Virus record (IMG/VR): IMGVR_UViG_3300050821_002957
Span: 186,001 to 250,000 of that record
Direction: 5' to 3' (one strand)
DNA length: 64,000 nucleotides
Under the pieces are notes generated by a model that saw only the letters and a program-made list of their open reading frames with translations, was not told where the DNA came from and ran no database searches. This document shows, one piece after another, positions 3,795 to 20,112 of this stretch (its first letter is position 1; each line of letters starts with the position of its first letter). A program made the translations under genes and the position numbers.

Positions 3795-3835
3795 TAGATA
3801 CATCTATTGACATCTGGTCGGGAATGCGGTATCCT
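3795..3835 (+). promoter_or_regulatory. Sigma70-type promoter with palindrome
   Basis: TAGATACATCTA-TTGACA-17 bp-TATCCT, ATG 6 nt later. Confidence 0.75.
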
Positions 3836-3841
3836 TTGAAT

Positions 3842-4138
3842 ATGAAGACACGGAAAACAGTCAACGTTGCGGAAATGCTTTTCACAGCGAACTATTTTAT
3901 GAAGCATTCCAAACCGGAGCAGGTTGGTGAGCGCCGGGGAACCGCCAGTTTGCTGGAATCGATGCTGCACGCCAGTGGCAACTACAGTGGTTTTGGCTAC
4001 ATCGAACTGACGAATGCCGGAACCAATCAGCAGAAGTTAGGTGACGAGAGCCGTGTGTTCTACTACGTTTCTCAGAACCTTCGGAATGACTACAAAGGTG
4101 TCGAAGATCGCAAAGCTCAGGAAGGATTCGTTTACTAA
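3842..4138 (+). CDS. Hypothetical protein, leaderless
   Basis: Start reassigned to ATG 3842 from promoter geometry. Confidence 0.7.
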
Positions 4139-8939: not shown

Positions 8940-9197
8940 ATGAATAACATTTTGCTGAACGATCCTGACACATTCATTCAATGGCGCAAAACCGATGAAC
9001 CCGGCGATAATCCAAAGTGGGAATCGCAGTGTGGTTATATCGAACAAACCAGCTTCGGGGATCGTCCAATATTCCAAGGATTTGTCGGCCCCAACCAAAC
9101 ACCCACTCAGACAAAGACCAGTCTAATTTCAATCAAACAAGAAGTCGAGCGGCTGTTTAAAAAGAATTATCAACTGACCTGGGCTTATCAAGATTAG
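8940..9197 (+). CDS. Hypothetical protein
   Basis: ORF downstream of TTGACA 8905. Confidence 0.6.
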   Translation: MNNILLNDPDTFIQWRKTDEPGDNPKWESQCGYIEQTSFGDRPIFQGFVGPNQTPTQTKTSLISIKQEVERLFKKNYQLTWAYQD

Positions 9198-12100
9198 GTC
9201 GGAATAAACATAGCGTTTTGATTGCGCTCATAAGATGTATCAGTGTTCTTTGCACGTAGGTCACCAGTATGAGTACTGTTATTGTTAGTGATCTTTGTGG
9301 TCTGTGGTGCAATGATCTGATGTCCGGTTCCTGATTGTCCTGACGTTCTGTTCAATTCAGAATTTACCGCTGAGACTTGTGCCAATTGAACACCAGTGCT
9401 TTCAGGAGACAATTTCGGTGTATCAAGTCTAGGAGCAGCAGTATTTGTAGCTGTGGCAACCATTGCAGGCATTGACGTTGCTGTTGGTCGATCTACAGGC
9501 TTTGGACTACGTGATAAAGCTGTCACCACATTCTTTTGATTAGCTACGTTCTTGATTGTATCGCCGTAACCTCTAGCCGTGGCATACTTCGCTCCCATGT
9601 TCTCAATGAACTTGTTTACATCTCCAGTCTTTTGATATTCGGCAAAGGCAGCGGCATACGGACCCTTTGGATTAGATAGGAGTTTTGCGTGAGCTATGAA
9701 ACCTTCTTCCATAGTCTTGTAATCGGCAAACTCTCTCTTGACTGAAAATCTTTTTTTGCCTGACCAACCCATCTTCAAAGGAGAGCCATCCAACTCTGTT
9801 GCTGTAGCTGCTTCTTTCGGTTTTGATTTTTGAAATTGAGCGAATTCAGCGGGAGTCATGTCTTCCTGGGTCGTTCTAGTCTGACTCATCGTATCGCTTT
9901 TTGATTTGGTGACTCCAAATGCATTGTTACCAATCGAATGCTTACCCCAACCAGATTCTACGGCCCATTGTGCAATTGTTACTTGAGCCGGAACACCAGT
10001 TGCTTTTTCTGCATCCATTGCCATCTGTGCGATTTCTGGTGGAACTTCGCCCTGCTTGTACTTGATGTTTTTGTTCTGTGTTCCGCCACCTGTTCCAAGA
10101 ATACCGATACCTGAACCACCAGCCGCCGTGACACCAGAAGATTGTGGCTGTGGCGTTGCAGGTGTCGGTGAGGTTGGTGAAGATGTCGGCGCAACTGTTT
10201 TCGTCTGTGTTGGCGATGTTGTCGGAGTGTGAAAGCTACGAGCAGTCTTTGCCAATTCAGGTGTAGATGAAATTGGAGTAGCAGGAGGCGGATTCAATCC
10301 TCTACGTGGCGTTACAGTATTTTGTGTCTGTTGGGTCGGAGCAGGCGCAGCACTAGGAGCCGGTGCTGAAGTAGTTGGTGCAGGCTTGGCTGTTTCTGCT
10401 GTCTTCTTACCGCCGCCAAATGGATGTAGAATTGAATTGATCTTATCAGAAATCCAATCAATGACAGATTTGATAGCATCGGTTACTGACTGCAAGGCAT
10501 CTGTCAAAATTTTGGTGTTTTGTGGGCCAATAATGTTTTCGACCATCTTCTTGATCGAATCGAAAACACTGGAGAAGGCCGTACTGATACTTGCAAACGC
10601 TTTGGTGATGGTCTCCATACCAGGGATCTTCATGATCTCTTGACCAAAGTTTTCAAATGATTTTGTGAATGCCTCGATTACCTTATCCAATGCATCTTTG
10701 ATGGTATCGAGATTGAACATCGTCAAGAACCATTTGCCAAGCGCACTGAACATTCCCAGTACACCATCTTTCAGTTCTTCTATTCCTTTGTCGAATGTCT
10801 TAGGATCAGACAAATCGGACAGACCATCGATGAACTTTGACAGTCCTTCAAAAAAGTCGCCGATGATCTCAATCATCTTGCCAAGACGTTTTGCGACAAA
10901 CTCCAGGATCGGTCCCAGAACTTTGAAGATTGGTTTGGATGCCACATAGAGAGCACTCAAAATGGAACCAATTGCTTTGAAAATGCTGGCAAACGATTTT
11001 GCGCTGGTCTTTCCAAGTGTCTTTCCAATTTCTGTTTTGACACCTGCCAATCCGAGCACGAAATCAATAATTCCGAACAGACCTTCGACCACGCCGCCTA
11101 AACCACCAGCGACCCGATCCATCATCGTCAATTTCTTTTTGTCTCCAAGATACTTTTCTGCGTGCATGAATGCCGGGATGAAATCGAAGATAGCAGTGAT
11201 TGCCATAATGACTTCGCCGACAACTGGAATGAAATCTAGGAATTCAGCCATTCGACCTGCGCCACCCAAGAGTTTTGCGCCCTTGAGCATCTCGCCGCCT
11301 TCGGCCAGGAGCTTAGTACCACCCTTTGCACCTGCTTCAGCACCTTCCCCGACTGCCTTTCCAACCTCTCCCAGACCCTTTGCGCCGTCCTCTACGGCTT
11401 CGATGCCGCTTGCCGCACCCTCAACACCCCTTCCAGCCCCAGAAGCGCCCTTGCCTCGTCCAAACCAGCGCTTGAACATGCCTCCTTCTTCAGCTTCAGC
11501 CCCACCTTTAGCAGTTTTGTTGCCGAGACCCAGCCACTTTCCAATTTTGCCGCCAAACAACCGTCCGATTCCGGCTTCAATGCCAGACATGAGACCGCCG
11601 AGCAAACCGCCCTTTTTCCCACCTGATTTTTTGGCGACATCAGCAAGCAATCCACCAGCATCGCCATCGGTTGTTTCCCGACGCTTTGCGTTCGCATCCA
11701 ATTCGGATTGATCTAGTTGCTTTGCAAGCAATTTGTTGATTTCTTTTAGTTCAATCAACTGCTCTTCGTCTAATTTTGCGACTCTCGAAAGCGGACCTTC
11801 TTTGTCGCTGGTAAGAATGCTCAATTTTTTGTCTTGATCTTTTTGGACACCTTCCATGAGCTTGAGCAAACCTGCGGTATTACTTTGGCTCGCCAGTTTT
11901 TCAGGATGTAATGTCGGTTCATCCAAATCCATACGCCCGTTTTGAACAAGCTCTGGAGCCGCCGCCTTTTTCAATTGTGGTGGTGCTTCAAATTTTTCTA
12001 CGTTTGGCATCGCATGAACAGCAGCAGTCATCATTGCTTTGACTGGACTGTTGTACGGATTTTTCATGCGCTCCGCTTCTTGCTTTTCCATATGGGCTAA

Positions 12101-13486
12101 AGCAGTCGGTTTCGGATGAGATTCTTCACCAAAAATTTCCGGCCAATCTGGTGTGCCTGAAGGCTTTTTTAAACTATCTTCATGCTTCTTTTGTAATAGA
12201 CCTTTACCATGCTTTCTGATGGACTCTAACCATGCATCACGTTCATCTAACTCTTGCTGCTTCTTTGGTGTGCTCTTCTGATAACCTGCCCAATCAGGAA
12301 TTGCATTACCCAAGTGATCCCGAACCAATTGCTGAGGAGCCGAGGACACAGATGGTCCGTGAGCTACTGCGGTCGGAGACGTTGATCCTATTGTTTGAAG
12401 TGGTGACTGAGATACTGGTGTTGACTGTCCTTGAGAACCAGCGGCACGTTCCCATAAAGGTTGATAATCAGGGCGCAACAATTCAGCACGCAAATTCTGA
12501 TGCTGTTCTGTGCTGATCTTACCCTTAGCGTGCAAATTTTCAAGAGCGGAGTGGCGAACATCTTCGTCTTTGATTTTTCCAAGATGTTCCTTTACGGTAT
12601 CATGATCATGTTTGACATCAGCATCGTCAAGCATCGGTTCATCCGGGCGTGGTAATACTTTTTTGATGTCACCGACTTTGAATTGATTAGCTTTTGTTTT
12701 CTGACGTGCTTCTCGACGATCACGCATTTTTTCGAGAATATACTTGGTAGCTAAACCGACAATCGGAGAGTGACCAGCCAAACCAGAGATGACACTGACT
12801 GCATCAATATTTTGCTTCTGTAAGAACGAACCCATTTTACCGAGCAAACCTGTACGCTGACGTGTCTCTTGCTCCAATGCCTTTTGTAGATTAAGAGTGG
12901 CATTAGTGAGAATCTTATTTTCGGTGCCGACAGTGCTGAATCGAACACTCTCTTGAATATCAGAGAGCTTTTTCTTTGCTCCTTCCAGTTCGTCCTTGCT
13001 GTACGTATGGTACTCGGACGCCATGCTATCAATATTTTCAGCGTGGCGTTTTCCTGCATCGGAATACACATTACCACGTCGTTGCTTAATCAGCTTTTCT
13101 TTGTCTTTCTTTTTTTGAAGCGCAGTAAGTTGATCGACGACTTTTTTGGTAGATGCTTCGACCTGACGAATCTTCTCGAAATCGTCATCATTGTTGTTGC
13201 CACCAGTAGACTTTCTTGGAGACCTTGGACGACTGCCACCGCCACCTGAAGACGAGTTACGAGGAGCAGATCCACCGCCGCCACCTGAAGACACGTTGCC
13301 ATCCTTTAACATGTCTGCTAGGTCTTCGGCTGCGTTTTCAGTGGCCTGTTGAAATACCTGATGGATTTTGGTCGTCAGCTTCTTGGACAGATCATCTAAG
13401 AGATCTTCTTTGTCCACAAGCGTCAGATTTGAAACATCAATCTGATTCAGGTCTACCCCGTTTTTTGTTGTCTTCTTGGATGGCAT
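9194..13486 (-). CDS. Baseplate hub / tail length determinant (gp29-like) with C-terminal GH73 (FlgJ-like) peptidoglycan hydrolase
   Basis: 1430 aa; Gly-rich and amphipathic repeats; AQWAVESGWG..NNAFG..YAT motifs; C-terminal APxT..NNNST; follows 26 and 51. Confidence 0.8.
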   Translation of the reverse strand: MPSKKTTKNGVDLNQIDVSNLTLVDKEDLLDDLSKKLTTKIHQVFQQATENAAEDLADMLKDGNVSSGGGGGSAPRNSSSGGGGSRPRSPRKSTGGNNNDDDFEKIRQVEASTKKVVDQLTALQKKKDKEKLIKQRRGNVYSDAGKRHAENIDSMASEYHTYSKDELEGAKKKLSDIQESVRFSTVGTENKILTNATLNLQKALEQETRQRTGLLGKMGSFLQKQNIDAVSVISGLAGHSPIVGLATKYILEKMRDRREARQKTKANQFKVGDIKKVLPRPDEPMLDDADVKHDHDTVKEHLGKIKDEDVRHSALENLHAKGKISTEQHQNLRAELLRPDYQPLWERAAGSQGQSTPVSQSPLQTIGSTSPTAVAHGPSVSSAPQQLVRDHLGNAIPDWAGYQKSTPKKQQELDERDAWLESIRKHGKGLLQKKHEDSLKKPSGTPDWPEIFGEESHPKPTALAHMEKQEAERMKNPYNSPVKAMMTAAVHAMPNVEKFEAPPQLKKAAAPELVQNGRMDLDEPTLHPEKLASQSNTAGLLKLMEGVQKDQDKKLSILTSDKEGPLSRVAKLDEEQLIELKEINKLLAKQLDQSELDANAKRRETTDGDAGGLLADVAKKSGGKKGGLLGGLMSGIEAGIGRLFGGKIGKWLGLGNKTAKGGAEAEEGGMFKRWFGRGKGASGAGRGVEGAASGIEAVEDGAKGLGEVGKAVGEGAEAGAKGGTKLLAEGGEMLKGAKLLGGAGRMAEFLDFIPVVGEVIMAITAIFDFIPAFMHAEKYLGDKKKLTMMDRVAGGLGGVVEGLFGIIDFVLGLAGVKTEIGKTLGKTSAKSFASIFKAIGSILSALYVASKPIFKVLGPILEFVAKRLGKMIEIIGDFFEGLSKFIDGLSDLSDPKTFDKGIEELKDGVLGMFSALGKWFLTMFNLDTIKDALDKVIEAFTKSFENFGQEIMKIPGMETITKAFASISTAFSSVFDSIKKMVENIIGPQNTKILTDALQSVTDAIKSVIDWISDKINSILHPFGGGKKTAETAKPAPTTSAPAPSAAPAPTQQTQNTVTPRRGLNPPPATPISSTPELAKTARSFHTPTTSPTQTKTVAPTSSPTSPTPATPQPQSSGVTAAGGSGIGILGTGGGTQNKNIKYKQGEVPPEIAQMAMDAEKATGVPAQVTIAQWAVESGWGKHSIGNNAFGVTKSKSDTMSQTRTTQEDMTPAEFAQFQKSKPKEAATATELDGSPLKMGWSGKKRFSVKREFADYKTMEEGFIAHAKLLSNPKGPYAAAFAEYQKTGDVNKFIENMGAKYATARGYGDTIKNVANQKNVVTALSRSPKPVDRPTATSMPAMVATATNTAAPRLDTPKLSPESTGVQLAQVSAVNSELNRTSGQSGTGHQIIAPQTTKITNNNSTHTGDLRAKNTDTSYERNQNAMFIPT

Positions 13487-13489
13487 TCA

Positions 13490-13798
13490 TTATCCGTTTA
13501 GTTGCTGTGGTCCATCAACTTTAGTAGTCGGATCGGGTAAAAGTTCATGCTTTGCTTGGTTACCCTTTTGGACGGCGTTGATGCGTTGCTGTTGAATGGT
13601 TGGTTCTGTCAAGTTCATTCTAAAGTTCAAGAATGTCTTTGCCGAACTGCGAAACCACGTCCAGGTCCATTGAGGGATCTCTTTGAACGAGGGCAGCATT
13701 TCAGGCATTGATCCGATGGTTGCCGACGCCAAAAGACCCAACATTAACTGGTTGTCTTTCGCCCAGGTTAGAATTTGTTCGATTGATGGCATGATCAT
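13490..13798 (-). CDS. Late protein with a hydrophobic segment; possible membrane or holin-like protein
   Basis: TAAATA 5 nt before ATG 13798. Confidence 0.5.
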   Translation of the reverse strand: MIMPSIEQILTWAKDNQLMLGLLASATIGSMPEMLPSFKEIPQWTWTWFRSSAKTFLNFRMNLTEPTIQQQRINAVQKGNQAKHELLPDPTTKVDGPQQLNG

Positions 13799-13841
13799 GG
13801 GACTATTTATGTCCAAGCCAATCAATAGATACATCAATAGT

Positions 13842-14003
13842 TTAGCGTTTTCTATTGTTCTCGTCGGCGATCCGTTTGTTTTCCGAATCGATGTAGTCTT
13901 TGATGAGAACTAGATAGGCATCACGTTCCCACGGTATCATTCCCTCGACCTCAGTCAACGAATACTTATGGTGAAACATGAGACTGAAGTTCACCATGAA
14001 CAT
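13842..14003 (-). CDS. 51: Baseplate hub assembly protein, short gp51-like form (53 aa), absent from the ORF track
   Basis: NFSLMFHHKYSLTEVEGMIPWERDAY matches the T4-like gp51 pattern. Confidence 0.85.
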   Translation of the reverse strand: MFMVNFSLMFHHKYSLTEVEGMIPWERDAYLVLIKDYIDSENKRIADENNRKR

Positions 14004-14029
14004 ATTCGGGAGTGAATTGTGGCTGAGGG

Positions 14030-14842
14030 CTATCCGAAAAAACTTGGAAGTCCCTCGATGTGGAGAGGTTCTTCATATCCACACTTTGAGCAATGGAACT
14101 GAGTATCATGTGCCAGCTTCGGAATTGATTCAAAAAACTTCTGAAGTTTGACAAACTGTGCCTGAGTTAGCTTCTCAACCCATTCTTGGATATCTTTGGT
14201 TGTAAAGTTGTTATAGACTGACTCTTCGTCAAAGACAGATTCGATACAAAGAGCAATAGTAATCAGAGCGTCGTTCACATTGTCCTTTGGAGTTACAACG
14301 GCCCCAGTCGCACGTAATAACTGTCTTGCCATCTTAAAATTTGGATAGCGCATGTTAACGCCAAGTGTTTCGGTCAAGAAAATCTGCTTCTGATGATCTT
14401 CGTTGAATTGTATCCTTACGTCATCCAGATTGATCTTAACTTTTACTACATGGTCACAATCGGCAATGATCGGTGCATCAGGATCATCATTGGACTTTTT
14501 GAAAATTCGACGTTTTTCAGCTTCTTCCGGCGTCAATGTCACTTTGTTGTGGCAACGATAACTCAATTCGACATTGGAATCTACCGAGCGTGAGCGCAAT
14601 TGTAAGAAGATGAATTCCAAATCGAAATTTGCCAGTTCTTCTACTTTGATTGGCGAAAGAGCACATGACGTGACTACCTGGACGATAGCATCGAGCATCT
14701 GCCTTTCATCTTCACCTTCCAATGCAATGAGCAACAGTTTCTCCTCTTTTACAAGGAACGGACGAAACTGGATTCCCTGGCCGGTGGACGGAATGATGAT
14801 TTCAAAATGGGGAACGATCTTTTCGAGATTGGGTAATGGCAT
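14030..14842 (-). CDS. 26: Baseplate hub subunit, gp26-like
   Basis: IPSTG..FRPFLVKEEKLLL..FDLEFIFLQLRSRSV..CSKC..EGLPSFF. Confidence 0.9.
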   Translation of the reverse strand: MPLPNLEKIVPHFEIIIPSTGQGIQFRPFLVKEEKLLLIALEGEDERQMLDAIVQVVTSCALSPIKVEELANFDLEFIFLQLRSRSVDSNVELSYRCHNKVTLTPEEAEKRRIFKKSNDDPDAPIIADCDHVVKVKINLDDVRIQFNEDHQKQIFLTETLGVNMRYPNFKMARQLLRATGAVVTPKDNVNDALITIALCIESVFDEESVYNNFTTKDIQEWVEKLTQAQFVKLQKFFESIPKLAHDTQFHCSKCGYEEPLHIEGLPSFFG

Positions 14843-14874: not shown

Positions 14875-15657
14875 TTATGTTAGTCCACCACTTGTGCCCG
14901 GACCATTATTGCTGCCGGGACCATTGACGGTCTGTGTAAACGGAACGTTCGTACCTGTGGCAGAACGTATCGCTGTTGTCTGACCACCATTGTTAGAGCC
15001 ACCATTGATGTAAGTCCAAGCACTCGCATATTTGTACGTAAAGGTCACTTGGATGGTCTGGAACGTATTGTTGTTTGCGTAAGCTAAAGGTTGTTGAGCA
15101 ATGGCAATAGGATACGCATCGATCAAGATAGTATAATAATTTGGGCTTACTTGAGCACCGCCGACCGACCCAGACCCAGAGTTTGCAAAATCTGGATATT
15201 GAACAATGGCAATGTCGGTGCAATATTCACTGATGTAGTTGAAATTGTTGGTGTTGAAATCCATCACCATGTACATCCAAGCCTCAAAAAACCAACGCTC
15301 ATTCATTTGGTTACCGCACATGAACGTCATAGTTGTGTCTTGATATTCCGGGCGATGAGGAATCTTGTACGATGGACCATAGGAACGATTGGTCTCCATT
15401 TGAAACTGATAGCTAGGAAGCTCAGACTGTTGACAATAAGCCTGTAATTCAATAGCCATCGTGGACGTGTCACCACTAAAATAGTCAGCCATCCAATCTA
15501 CAGCATCGTCGCTAAACTGGAGAATAGCGGATTGTGCATTGTAGATTGCGGTAGATCGCTGCGCCAGAGCTTGAGTAGGAATGGTAATGTCATAACAATT
15601 TTGAACAGCCCAACCTGTGCTATTCAATTGTGATCGGAATGCGTCGATGTTTAACAT
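14875..15657 (-). CDS. 54: Tail tube initiator / tube-fold protein, gp54-like
   Basis: CQQSELP..YGP..ERWFFEAW..DAYPIAI..VTFTYK; synteny. Confidence 0.7.
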   Translation of the reverse strand: MLNIDAFRSQLNSTGWAVQNCYDITIPTQALAQRSTAIYNAQSAILQFSDDAVDWMADYFSGDTSTMAIELQAYCQQSELPSYQFQMETNRSYGPSYKIPHRPEYQDTTMTFMCGNQMNERWFFEAWMYMVMDFNTNNFNYISEYCTDIAIVQYPDFANSGSGSVGGAQVSPNYYTILIDAYPIAIAQQPLAYANNNTFQTIQVTFTYKYASAWTYINGGSNNGGQTTAIRSATGTNVPFTQTVNGPGSNNGPGTSGGLT

Positions 15658-16844
15658 TATCGTCTCCTTTTTAACTTTTGAATCATTCGTTTGCTGTCAC
15701 TCCAGACTCGTTCTTTCTTTTCTTTCTGGAATTGCTCGACCGGCAAGAACACTGCAATCTCCCAATCAACCGGCTCCACGTTGAGTAGTTCACTCTTTAC
15801 CTGTGATGCCAAGTAACGTTTGATCGTCGGTTTAACTTCAGGAAACTGTGCCACGTTCTTGATCAAACCATATGACATTTGCAATTTTGTAATCTTATCT
15901 AATGATTTATCGTTCGCAAAGGAAAGTAGTTTGTCGAAGAGCTTTGCACGAAGTAACAATGGAAGATAATGAAGATTGAGACCCAGCCATCCGTCATCGT
16001 ACAGTTCGACGACGAAGATCAAAGGAAACTTATCCCAATATGGAAGATCGTCTTTGGTCTTTGCATCATAAAAATACATGAACATCTTTCCGACCAATGC
16101 TTCGGCGGCTGTCTGCCCTTGTGAAATTAATCTGGTACGGTTCGGTGACTTTTTTGTCTTGTTAACATTGTCGGTCAGCCAGTTGCGTGCGCCTTTGGTT
16201 AATGACTTGATGCCATAACGACGAAGTTTGAGACGTATCTTTTCAAAGAACGTTGGATTCCTTGGATCTTTCGGGGGAATCCAATCGCCTTGTTTGATGT
16301 CTGGCTTCTGCGCTGGGGGAGGAGCACTTGGTTGACCACCACGACTGACTTGTGTCGGTTGGGGACCTTCCGGCGCAGTTATTTCAGGCGCATATTGTTT
16401 TGCAACGTCTCTAATATCCTCTGGTGGCTTACTAGGATCGTAATAGCTCTTTACTGCATCTCGAATCGATTGAATAGAAGAGTTATGTGGGTCGAGTTTG
16501 TTCTGTTTGATGATCTGAATAATCTCGCTTTCAGAAGCCTTCTTGCCAATAGCCTTGATGTTTCGCCCGACCAAGTGTTTCAAGTCCTGCATTGCGCTAT
16601 GAGCAACAACCTTCTTCGCAGCTTCCTGGATCACTTTGTCATTTACGAGCGAGGATTTTGAGAGATGAGTTACAACGCTGGCAATGTCTTCGTTCGCAAC
16701 GGGGCGATTCGGTACGAGTTTATGAAAGGCGTCAGATATCAAACTCTTGATATTTGGAACTTTGTTGGGATCGAAAGAGACACTACGGACATACTTCGTC
16801 GCAATCTTTCGGATCTCTGCTTCACTAATAATTTGTTTTGGCAT
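15657..16844 (-). CDS. 2: DNA end protector, gp2-like, with about 190-aa N-terminal extension
   Basis: GKMFMYFYDAKTKDDLPYWDKFPL..GLNLHYLP..KRYL..FLPVEQF..VWSDS. Confidence 0.92.
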   Translation of the reverse strand: MPKQIISEAEIRKIATKYVRSVSFDPNKVPNIKSLISDAFHKLVPNRPVANEDIASVVTHLSKSSLVNDKVIQEAAKKVVAHSAMQDLKHLVGRNIKAIGKKASESEIIQIIKQNKLDPHNSSIQSIRDAVKSYYDPSKPPEDIRDVAKQYAPEITAPEGPQPTQVSRGGQPSAPPPAQKPDIKQGDWIPPKDPRNPTFFEKIRLKLRRYGIKSLTKGARNWLTDNVNKTKKSPNRTRLISQGQTAAEALVGKMFMYFYDAKTKDDLPYWDKFPLIFVVELYDDGWLGLNLHYLPLLLRAKLFDKLLSFANDKSLDKITKLQMSYGLIKNVAQFPEVKPTIKRYLASQVKSELLNVEPVDWEIAVFLPVEQFQKEKKERVWSDSKRMIQKLKRRR

Positions 16845-19620: not shown

Positions 19621-20112
19621 ATGATCTGTAAGAAATGCCAAAATCGTATCCCTACTCGCATTGTAATCGAAGGCCGTCGCCGAAACCTTCAGCGCCGCAA
19701 GTATTGTTTAAAGTGCTCGCCATTCGGAGTCCACAACACTGGCGACCCACAAAAAATTTCTCTTCGAGGTACAGATCGAAAATGCGAAGGATGTATCAAC
19801 ATGATAGAACGTCGAAGACGATATTGTTCATCATGCATAAGCCGGATGCGCCGTCACAAAAGAAAACAGGTTGGTGTAGATGTGTTGGGAGGAAAATGTA
19901 TGGATTGCGGCTATAATCGATGTCTGGCTGCTCTCTCATTTCATCACCGTGATCCTTCAAAAAAGGAATTTACGATCAGTGAATTTTCGAGAACTACGAT
20001 GTCTCGATTCATTGCCGAAGTAAAGAAGTGTGATTTGGTTTGTGCTACATGCCACATCGAGAGGCACTATTTGAAAGATGGAGCCGAGTGGGAGAATCGA
20101 ACTCCCGAATGA
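19621..20112 (+). CDS. HNH endonuclease, homing type, overlapping the 3' end of a tRNA gene
   Basis: GGKCMDCGY..ALSFHHRDP..KCDLVCATCH. Confidence 0.88.
   Translation: MICKKCQNRIPTRIVIEGRRRNLQRRKYCLKCSPFGVHNTGDPQKISLRGTDRKCEGCINMIERRRRYCSSCISRMRRHKRKQVGVDVLGGKCMDCGYNRCLAALSFHHRDPSKKEFTISEFSRTTMSRFIAEVKKCDLVCATCHIERHYLKDGAEWENRTPE

Follow-up and report, generated by a model that had tools for sequence, protein, structure and literature searches.

A conserved −1 slip site at the end of gene 26 in a T4-like soil phage and its relatives: a putative frameshift-made tail chaperone pair

Gene 26 and described tail assembly chaperones

In phage lambda, the tail assembly chaperones gpG and gpGT share an N-terminus and are produced from one gene by a −1 frameshift at G GGA AAG, a few codons before the stop of the short form, with the gene lying between the tube gene and the tape-measure gene. 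The contractile-tailed phage P2 makes gpE and gpE+E’ in a comparable way, upstream of its tape measure, with a slip on a T run that is probably T TTT TTG. In T4, by contrast, gp26 and gp51 are encoded by two divergently transcribed paralogous genes with no frameshift. Both are listed as hub assembly chaperones, and gp51 is listed as required for assembly but absent from the particle (PMC3004832).

We examined gene 26 in a 64,000-nucleotide stretch (positions 186,001 to 250,000 of IMG/VR record IMGVR_UViG_3300050821_002957, hereafter ‘the window’) of the 405,631-bp genome of a T4-like soil jumbo phage. The original prediction proposed that a −1 ribosomal frameshift fuses gp26 to a gp51-like ORF upstream of a tape-measure-like gene, and that the two products form a G/GT-type chaperone pair. 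The sequence observation is confirmed, and both parts of the interpretation are supported computationally. Gene 26 ends AGT TTT TTC GGA TAG, with the −1 frame open through the slip site, as detailed in Table 1. As in lambda, a tube-family gene lies upstream and a tape-measure-like gene downstream, and the order is the same in relatives. The locus differs from lambda in that there is no sequence similarity, the short form carries an extra Cys-containing C-terminal half, the extension is only about 64 aa, and one small ORF intervenes before the tape-measure-like gene. There is likewise no detectable homology to the P2 system. Searches of the literature and of GenBank annotations found no description of a 26/51 frameshift, although an earlier remark in the KVP40 genome paper cannot be excluded, and a KVP40-derived GenBank note does mention a 40-aa similarity to the C-terminus of gp51.

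Table 1 Features of the gene 26 locus, in coordinates of the window.
Coordinates	Strand	Feature	Details
14875..15657	−	Tube-family protein (gp54/gp48-like)	Immediately upstream of gene 26; phrog_45 and phrog_3629 tail tube; PF23849 weak
14030..14842	−	Gene 26 (0 frame), the short product, analogue of lambda G	270 aa; PF12322 T4_baseplate, E 2.5e-56
14051..14056	−	GAGGGA, Shine-Dalgarno-like purine run	9 nt upstream of the heptamer; possible stimulator (inferred)
14036..14042	−	Slippery heptamer T TTT TTC (X XXY YYZ in the gp26 frame, phase 2)	Encodes the invariant F268-F269
14030..14032	−	0-frame stop TAG	One codon after the heptamer
13842..14072	−	Open −1 frame	Ends at TAA 13844-13842
13845..14036	−	−1 frame extension, equal to the Gp51_C module	64 codons; after the FF reads RIALSHNSLPN, then MFMVNFSL; joined to gp26 residues 1-269 gives a predicted 333-aa trans-frame protein
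13842..14003	−	‘gp51-like’ ORF as a gene caller would annotate it, from ATG 14003	53 aa; lacks the first 11 conserved residues of the module; phrog_634 ‘baseplate hub assembly catalyst’, E 3e-18, profile positions 69-119 of 121 only
13490..13837	−	Small ORF of unknown function	115 aa by the first start codon; position conserved in relatives
9194..13486	−	Tape-measure-like protein with a C-terminal glucosaminidase domain	1430 aa; phrog_1535 and phrog_4200 tape measure (E 8e-17 and 1e-8); PF01832 (E 1e-18); no BLASTP similarity to T4 gp29

Conservation of the slip site and coding constraint in the −1 frame

As T6 runs are common in the window (81 on both strands), the run alone means little, and its significance comes from comparison. 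An in-phase T TTT TT[C/T/G] heptamer, located 0-2 codons (8 in one case) before the gp26 stop, is found in 29 of 31 T4-like genomes examined, at 20-80% protein identity. These span cyanophages, KVP40-like and other Vibrio phages, and Aeromonas, Pseudomonas, Rhizobium, Stenotrophomonas, Desulfovibrio, Pelagibacter and soil jumbo phages. The −1 frame gives an extension of 55-67 residues, while the +1 frame stays open for at most 27 codons past the gp26 stop, and for 2-7 in most genomes. The only exceptions are two outlying phages, Salmonella PM10 (Ackermannviridae) and Vibrio K452, which lack the T6 run. Within the window, only 3 of 50 FF dipeptides are written T TTT TTY. We also see that the stop lies one codon after the heptamer in most genomes, and that all 120 listed homologue clusters end in FF plus 1 (118 clusters) or 3 (2 clusters) residues. 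The last 0-frame residue varies (G, V, A or E in the 15 commonest of the 120 cluster endings), but each of these has a G-first codon, which keeps Arg in the −1 frame with the commonest heptamer ending, TTC. A pattern search of IMG/VR with gp26 returned only 4 loci. No insertion or deletion at the T run was seen in the source contig, nor in a roughly 93%-identical contig from another soil study, and as the arrangement is conserved across independent genomes, sequencing or assembly error can be rejected, as can chance.

The peptide immediately after the slip site is conserved and shows codon-position periodicity where no start codon exists. Pairwise differences at codon positions 1/2/3 of the −1 frame before any ATG are 20/28/61 in the window’s own clade, and 69/63/173 in six phages whose first ATG is at codon 19. 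The position of the first ATG in the extension ranges from codon 2 to codon 32. In Aeromonas AS-sw and Acidovorax ACP17 it lies in the middle of the module, at codons 31-32, and Desulfovibrio phage 7757 has no ATG, GTG or TTG anywhere in the extension. Of 20 annotated records, 6 left the extension unannotated.

RNAalifold on 11 junctions found no conserved downstream RNA structure (−0.77 kcal/mol, no covariation), and the window’s own local hairpin is weak (z −1.9). A G-rich AGG/GGG run sits at the same distance upstream in every junction compared, with the exception of Vibrio K452 (Salmonella PM10 was not among them). This run is reminiscent of the internal Shine-Dalgarno of E. coli dnaX, which appears to lie about 10 nt upstream of A AAA AAG, although dnaX likely also needs a downstream hairpin. 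GAG is 29% of Glu codons and GGA is 22% of Gly codons in the window, but the run also encodes a conserved x-Gly, so any stimulatory role cannot be separated from protein constraint.

Relation to T4 gp51 and predicted fold of the gp26 N-terminal domain

The predicted trans-frame product matches T4 gp51 end to end, with the junction falling at the slip site. Residues 1-201 of T4 gp51 are PF12322 (E 4e-52), and residues 200-245 align to the extension, starting at the slip-site Phe (BLASTP E 5e-5; hhalign probability 94.7%, E 6e-8). The gp26 profile aligns to gp51 residues 11-202 (probability 95.8%, E 8e-9). Of 94 T4-type gp51 homologues, 91 carry PF12322 and PF28602 (Gp51_C) in one ORF of 248-266 aa, while the other three are shorter and carry PF12322 only. 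PF28602 gave weak matches on close relatives. The module here lies in the −1 frame, so a single polypeptide depends on the inferred frameshift. T4 has two PF12322 genes, whereas the window’s genome, KVP40-like PG216, Aeromonas AS-sw, S-PM2 and Salmonella PM10 have one each.

The gp26 structure was predicted with a pLDDT of 90 and a pTM of 0.81. The four best structural matches to residues 1-96 of the model, among 48,161 chains, were Rbstp2171 (3FGX, Z 8.2), the HK97 tail assembly chaperone (2OB9, Z 6.7), YqbN (3KLU, Z 6.7) and PLE ORF19 (5IR0, Z 5.3), all described as tail assembly chaperones (PMC9603447, PMC12987554). Each is covered almost end to end (82-88 aligned residues of 96-119, rmsd 4.1-4.5 Å), and the next hit was at Z 4.9 in the wide search and Z 2.8 in a second comparison. 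However, sequence identity is only 7-15%, the matched proteins are single-domain and about 100-120 aa, and sequence and profile searches against PDB and Pfam gave no link to chaperone families. Foldseek against PDB gave nothing significant for either the gp26 or the gp51 model, with the HK97 protein having the highest probability for gp26, but only 0.44. The match was not reproduced with a model of the whole T4-type gp51, folded as a natural in-frame equivalent. Here, generic helix hairpins on residues 193-250 filled the list in the wide search, and the second comparison was restricted to Foldseek’s own candidates.

A putatively recoded gene 26 and alternatives

Taken together, we consider it likely that gene 26 of this phage is a recoded gene giving two proteins with the same N-terminal 269 residues, although no RNA run holding the locus was found and there are no protein data. 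Most ribosomes would stop at the TAG to make gp26, while a fraction would slip back one base on U UUU UUC, the P-site tRNA-Phe re-pairing UUU to UUU and the A-site tRNA-Phe re-pairing UUC to UUU, before reading CGG (Arg) and 63 more codons. The long form would be the orthologue in architecture of T4 gp51, which T4 and its close relatives encode as a separate, in-frame paralogue of gene 26, such that one gene plus a frameshift would do the work of genes 26 and 51. By fold, gene position and T4 genetics, which suggests that the products are non-structural and essential, the pair most likely acts as the tail assembly (tape-measure) chaperones of T4-like phages, although the chaperone mechanism and partners, like the ribosomal nature of the shift, are inferred. 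The shared N-terminal domain would hold the tape-measure protein during hub assembly, and the C-terminal helical extension, present in a minority of molecules, would recruit a tube- or hub-family partner, like the T part of lambda GT.

It is unlikely that the Gp51_C module is made only as a separate small protein by translational coupling, with the T run merely encoding a conserved Phe-Phe. Many GenBank records do annotate it this way, the ATG at codon 11 is conserved in the window’s own clade, an ATG lies at codons 2-4 in S-PM2, S-ShM2, DLP6, D481, PG216 and RL2RES, and in K452 an ATG overlaps the stop (TAATG). A separately initiated small protein could therefore coexist with the fusion. However, this reading does not sit well with the late or missing start codons and the periodicity and conserved motif upstream of them, with the fused architecture of T4 gp51, or with the fixation of synonymous sites in 29 of 31 genomes, where the preceding codon always ends in T and the first Phe is always TTT. 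It is similarly unlikely that the same fusion arises by transcriptional slippage, in which RNA polymerase would add one U in the U6 run. A one-base insertion would give the identical protein, and four genomes have T7 or longer runs, but six bases is probably short for efficient polymerase slippage, and the run is always in the X XXY YYZ phase, including the T that ends the preceding codon, which only tandem tRNA slippage requires. In addition, the Rhizobium phage RL2RES has T TTT TTG, probably the same heptamer as P2.

A further possibility, which we regard as doubtful but less easily dismissed, is that the frameshift is real but the pair is not a tape-measure chaperone, PF12322 proteins instead being hub components or assembly catalysts with another role. 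Z values of 5-8 may reflect common arrangements, so the chaperone-like fold could be a coincidental small alpha/beta arrangement, and the failure to recover it with the gp51 model is in keeping with this. PF12322 also has an extra C-terminal half of about 170 residues with invariant Cys residues that known chaperones lack, and some T4 genetic studies placed gp26 in the hub (PMC3004832). Against this are the identity of the top four structural hits, the G/GT-like gene position and two-product arrangement, and the absence of gp51 from virions.

A broader reading, which we consider only somewhat more likely than not, is that gp26 plus gp51 is the long-missing tail assembly chaperone of T4-like phages. 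The G/GT-style −1 frameshift would then be the ancestral state across the whole T4-like superfamily (Kyanoviridae, KVP40-like and Aeromonas Straboviridae, Pootjesviridae, soil jumbo phages and others), with T4 itself the derived exception that replaced recoding by gene duplication. This would extend the tail-chaperone frameshift rule to the best-studied contractile phage lineage. Hundreds of deposited genomes need correcting. In the 20 annotated records the extension was either missing or given arbitrary start codons, and none carried a slippage join. gp26 and gp51 are among the last T4 tail genes without a mechanistic role. Recognising them as the short and long forms of one chaperone gives a directly testable model for hub and tape-measure assembly. 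The finding supports the view that the tail-chaperone frameshift is near-universal in long-tailed phages.

Sequence anatomy and conservation of the gene 26 junction

The positions of the gene 26 junction and of its neighbours are collected in the table below. Gene 26, which is assigned to PF12322 T4_baseplate (E 2.5e-56) and to phrog_150 'baseplate hub', ends AGT TTT TTC GGA TAG, so that the heptamer T TTT TTC lies in the X XXY YYZ phase. After the two Phe codons, the -1 frame reads RIALSHNSLPN and then, from its ATG, MFMVNFSL. The short ORF beginning at that ATG matches phrog_634 'baseplate hub assembly catalyst' at E 3e-18, although it covers only positions 69-119 of the 121-position profile, and it also weakly matches the C-terminal end of the gp26 profile phrog_150. 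The original prediction, which described a slippery heptamer at the end of gene 26 followed by a stop-free -1 reading into a gp51-like ORF, is therefore exact.

Features of the window and of compared loci (L handles denote loci read in other genomes)
Feature	Sequence	Position	Strand
Window in the virus record	G000:C1	186001-250000	
HNH endonuclease ORF	window	19621-20112	+
gp2	window	15657-16844	-
Tube-family protein	window	14875-15657	-
Gene 26 (270 aa)	window	14842 to 14030	-
Purine run GAGGGA, 9 nt upstream of the heptamer	window	14056-14051	-
Heptamer T TTT TTC	window	14042-14036	-
0-frame stop TAG	window	14032-14030	-
Open -1 frame	window	14072 to a TAA at 13844-13842	-
ATG of the 53-aa gp51-like ORF	window	14003	-
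115-aa ORF	window	13490-13837	-
Tape-measure-like protein (1430 aa)	window	9194-13486	-
ORF corresponding to the 115-aa ORF	L028	2543-2830	
ORF corresponding to the 115-aa ORF	L029	2566-2907	
ORF corresponding to the 115-aa ORF	L031	2530-2844	
ORF corresponding to the 115-aa ORF	L032	2488-2769	
Junction with a longer 0 frame	L008 (Pelagibacter phage Mosig)	1013-1046	
Region with a Gp51_C-like -1 ORF but without the T6 heptamer	L023 (Salmonella phage PM10)	1201-2165	
Region with a Gp51_C-like -1 ORF but without the T6 heptamer	L026 (Vibrio phage K452)	1000-2003	
T4 gene 26'	L005 (T4 record)	3803-4090	

The window belongs to a 405,631-bp T4-like virus record, rated 100% complete, from soil metagenomes, and relatives of 343-400 kb carry the same tail module; these are jumbo T4-like soil phages. 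The tape-measure-like protein ends in a glucosaminidase domain (PF01832), but homologues in relatives instead carry T6SS_VgrG3-like_C or a faint Glyco_hydro_19 hit, so the lytic domain on the tape measure seems to be exchangeable. The protein shows no BLASTP similarity to T4 gp29. A conserved ORF of about 95-115 aa with no family assignment always sits between the extension and the tape-measure-like gene, and Melnitz, DLP6 and RL2RES have one in the same place; it could be a further hub or tape-measure accessory. An HNH endonuclease ORF (phrog_2255, E 1e-35) lies near the tail and head-completion genes and is probably a mobile homing element.

As T6 runs are frequent in the window, with 81 on both strands, the significance of the heptamer had to be assessed by comparison. 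The gene 26 junction was read in 30 other genomes, comprising 16 GenBank phages found with the extension as query, 5 more distant ones found with gp26, 3 IMG/VR contigs, and 6 metagenomic relatives of the window's own clade at 50-74% gp26 identity. In 29 of 31 genomes, the window included, the gp26 frame contains xxT TTT TT[C/T/G], which lies 0-2 codons before the stop (8 in Pelagibacter phage Mosig, where the two frames therefore overlap over the most conserved part of the extension). The -1 frame then continues for 55-67 codons, while the +1 frame stays open for at most 27 codons beyond the gp26 stop, and for 2-7 in most genomes. The genomes span Kyanoviridae, KVP40-like Schizotequatrovirus, Aeromonas Emmerichvirinae, Pootjesviridae and Busanvirus, as well as Pseudomonas, Stenotrophomonas, Ochrobactrum, Desulfovibrio, Pelagibacter and Methylophilales phages and soil jumbo phages, and gp26 identity to the window falls to about 20-25% in the most distant of them.

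The codon before the Phe pair always ends in T, whether it encodes Ser, Ala, Asp or Asn, and the first Phe codon is always TTT. In the window, only 3 of 50 Phe-Phe dipeptides in long ORFs are written in this way. If about ten deep lineages are treated as independent, we estimate the chance expectation to be of the order of 1e-12. We also see that all 120 listed homologue clusters of gp26 end in FF plus one residue (118) or three residues (2). In the 15 commonest endings the last residue is G, V, A or E, which are chemically unrelated but all have G-first codons; with the commonest heptamer ending, TTC, this keeps CGN (Arg) in the -1 frame. The T6 length is unchanged in the source contig and in a roughly 93%-identical contig from a different soil study.

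The -1 extension and its correspondence to T4 gp51

The 26 extensions align without gaps from the FF onward, with the consensus FFRIAL-H-SL-N--KTNFAL--HHKYSL-E-E-M-PWERD-Y. The first ATG in this frame lies at codon 2, 3, 4, 9, 11, 12, 14, 16, 19, 31 or 32, depending on the phage. Desulfovibrio phage 7757 has no ATG, GTG or TTG at all, and in Aeromonas AS-sw and Acidovorax ACP17 the first start falls in the middle of the module. Pairwise nucleotide differences between the slip site and the first ATG fall mainly on the third position of the -1 frame, with counts at positions 1/2/3 of 20/28/61 in the window's clade (11 codons) and 69/63/173 in six phages whose first ATG is at codon 19. Independent initiation cannot explain this, but a -1 shift from gene 26 can. 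Annotation of this region in GenBank is inconsistent. In six of the 20 annotated records the extension is not annotated at all, and none of the 20 shows a joined CDS, while the Desulfovibrio record carries no annotation. Where 'gp51' is annotated, its start is placed anywhere from the codon after the gp26 stop to 18 codons into the module, and the product is sometimes named hypothetical; PG216 labels its gp26 'baseplate hub assembly catalyst'.

The predicted product of the inferred frameshift corresponds to T4 gp51. T4 gp51 (249 aa) is a complete PF12322 domain (residues 1-201, E 4e-52), like gp26, followed by 48 extra residues. Those extra residues (200-245) align with the window's extension, starting at the slip-site Phe (BLASTP E 5e-5). 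In profile-profile comparisons, the extension alignment matches gp51 columns 200-249 (probability 94.7%, E 6e-8) and the gp26 alignment matches gp51 columns 11-202 (probability 95.8%, E 8e-9), and the two matches abut at the slip site. Of the 94 T4-type gp51 homologues, 91 carry PF12322 plus PF28602 (Gp51_C) in one ORF of 248-266 aa, and the other three are shorter (137-220 aa) and carry PF12322 only. None of the 120 best gp26 homologues of the window is longer than 284 aa.

T4 has two PF12322 genes, 26 and 51, which are divergently transcribed, whereas the window's complete genome, KVP40-like PG216, Aeromonas AS-sw, S-PM2 and Salmonella PM10 each have one. Two paralogous genes in T4 thus correspond to one gene plus a -1 extension elsewhere. 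Both arrangements occur within Straboviridae, and the other families sampled have the single-gene form. The frameshift arrangement is therefore probably ancestral, although this is an inference made without a phylogenetic tree. The T4 record also annotates gene 26', an internal in-frame product of gene 26 (95 aa, the C-terminal part), which is another way of making two proteins from a PF12322 gene.

Predicted fold of gp26 and a possible chaperone role

AlphaFold2 modelling from a 45-sequence alignment gave a confident gp26 model (pLDDT 90, pTM 0.81). The model was compared with 48,161 PDB representatives in a search that does not depend on Foldseek, and the four best matches all fall on residues 1-96, as listed below.

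Best structural matches to residues 1-96 of the gp26 model
PDB chain	Protein	Z	rmsd (A)	Aligned / target length
3FGX_B	Rbstp2171	8.2	4.5	88 / 96
2OB9_B	HK97 tail assembly chaperone	6.7	4.4	86 / 104
3KLU_A	YqbN	6.7	4.1	86 / 119
5IR0_B	PLE ORF19	5.3	4.2	82 / 103

The next hit in that search is unrelated, at Z 4.9. When Foldseek's top 1000 chains were re-examined, again only 2OB9, 3KLU and 5IR0 were found above Z 5, followed by nothing above Z 2.8. Of these structures, 2OB9, 3KLU and 3FGX are described as tail assembly chaperones (PMC9603447), and 5IR0 is treated as the PLE chaperone (PMC12987554). The Z values are moderate, but four of four top hits belonging to one small functional class is hard to get by accident. 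However, the match was not reproduced with the whole T4-type gp51 model (pLDDT 92), for which helix hairpins matching the C-terminal extension filled the list, and no sequence-level link to chaperone families was found. In the gp51 model the extension is a set of four helices (196-249). Four invariant cysteines in gp26 (C60, C129, C251 and C254), and the nearly invariant C199, across 45 homologues suggest a metal site in the non-chaperone half of the protein; T4-type gp51 keeps CxxC and CC motifs and gives weak zinc-ribbon hits.

A review of the T4 tail lists gp26 and gp51 as hub assembly chaperones, and states that gp51 is required for assembly but is not present in the particle (PMC3004832). 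Together with the gene position, these data support a G/GT-type pair, in which the shared domain with the predicted chaperone fold would handle the tape measure during hub formation, and the rarer extended form would recruit a tube- or hub-family partner. These partners are inferred.

Mode of expression and relation to known tail frameshifts

The heptamer allows classical tandem slippage of two tRNA-Phe, and the 0-frame stop one codon after the site is also conserved. No conserved downstream structure was found. An SD-like purine run is present in nearly all the genomes, and in the window it uses minority codons (GAG is 29% of Glu and GGA 22% of Gly), but as it also encodes a conserved x-Gly it is only a candidate stimulator. 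Transcriptional slippage from U6 to U7 would give the same protein; the strict phase of the run argues against this, but it is not excluded. A separately initiated small protein may also coexist with the fusion where an early ATG is present. Salmonella PM10 (ATT TTC ATT TAA, with no annotated downstream ORF) and Vibrio K452 (CTT TTT GCG TAA TG, with an ATG overlapping the stop) keep a Gp51_C-like -1 ORF but lack the T6 run, and may express the same module by coupling or by a single-tRNA slip.

In the full-text literature searched, we found no description of a 26/51 frameshift or of gp26/gp51 as the T4-type tail assembly chaperone. A note copied from the KVP40 genome paper remarks only on a 40-aa similarity to the C-terminus of gp51. 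The kind of element is itself well known, being the conserved tail-chaperone frameshift of Xu, Hendrix and Duda 2004. What seems to be new, and of real interest to phage biologists, is its inferred presence in the T4-like lineage and the resulting identity of gp51.
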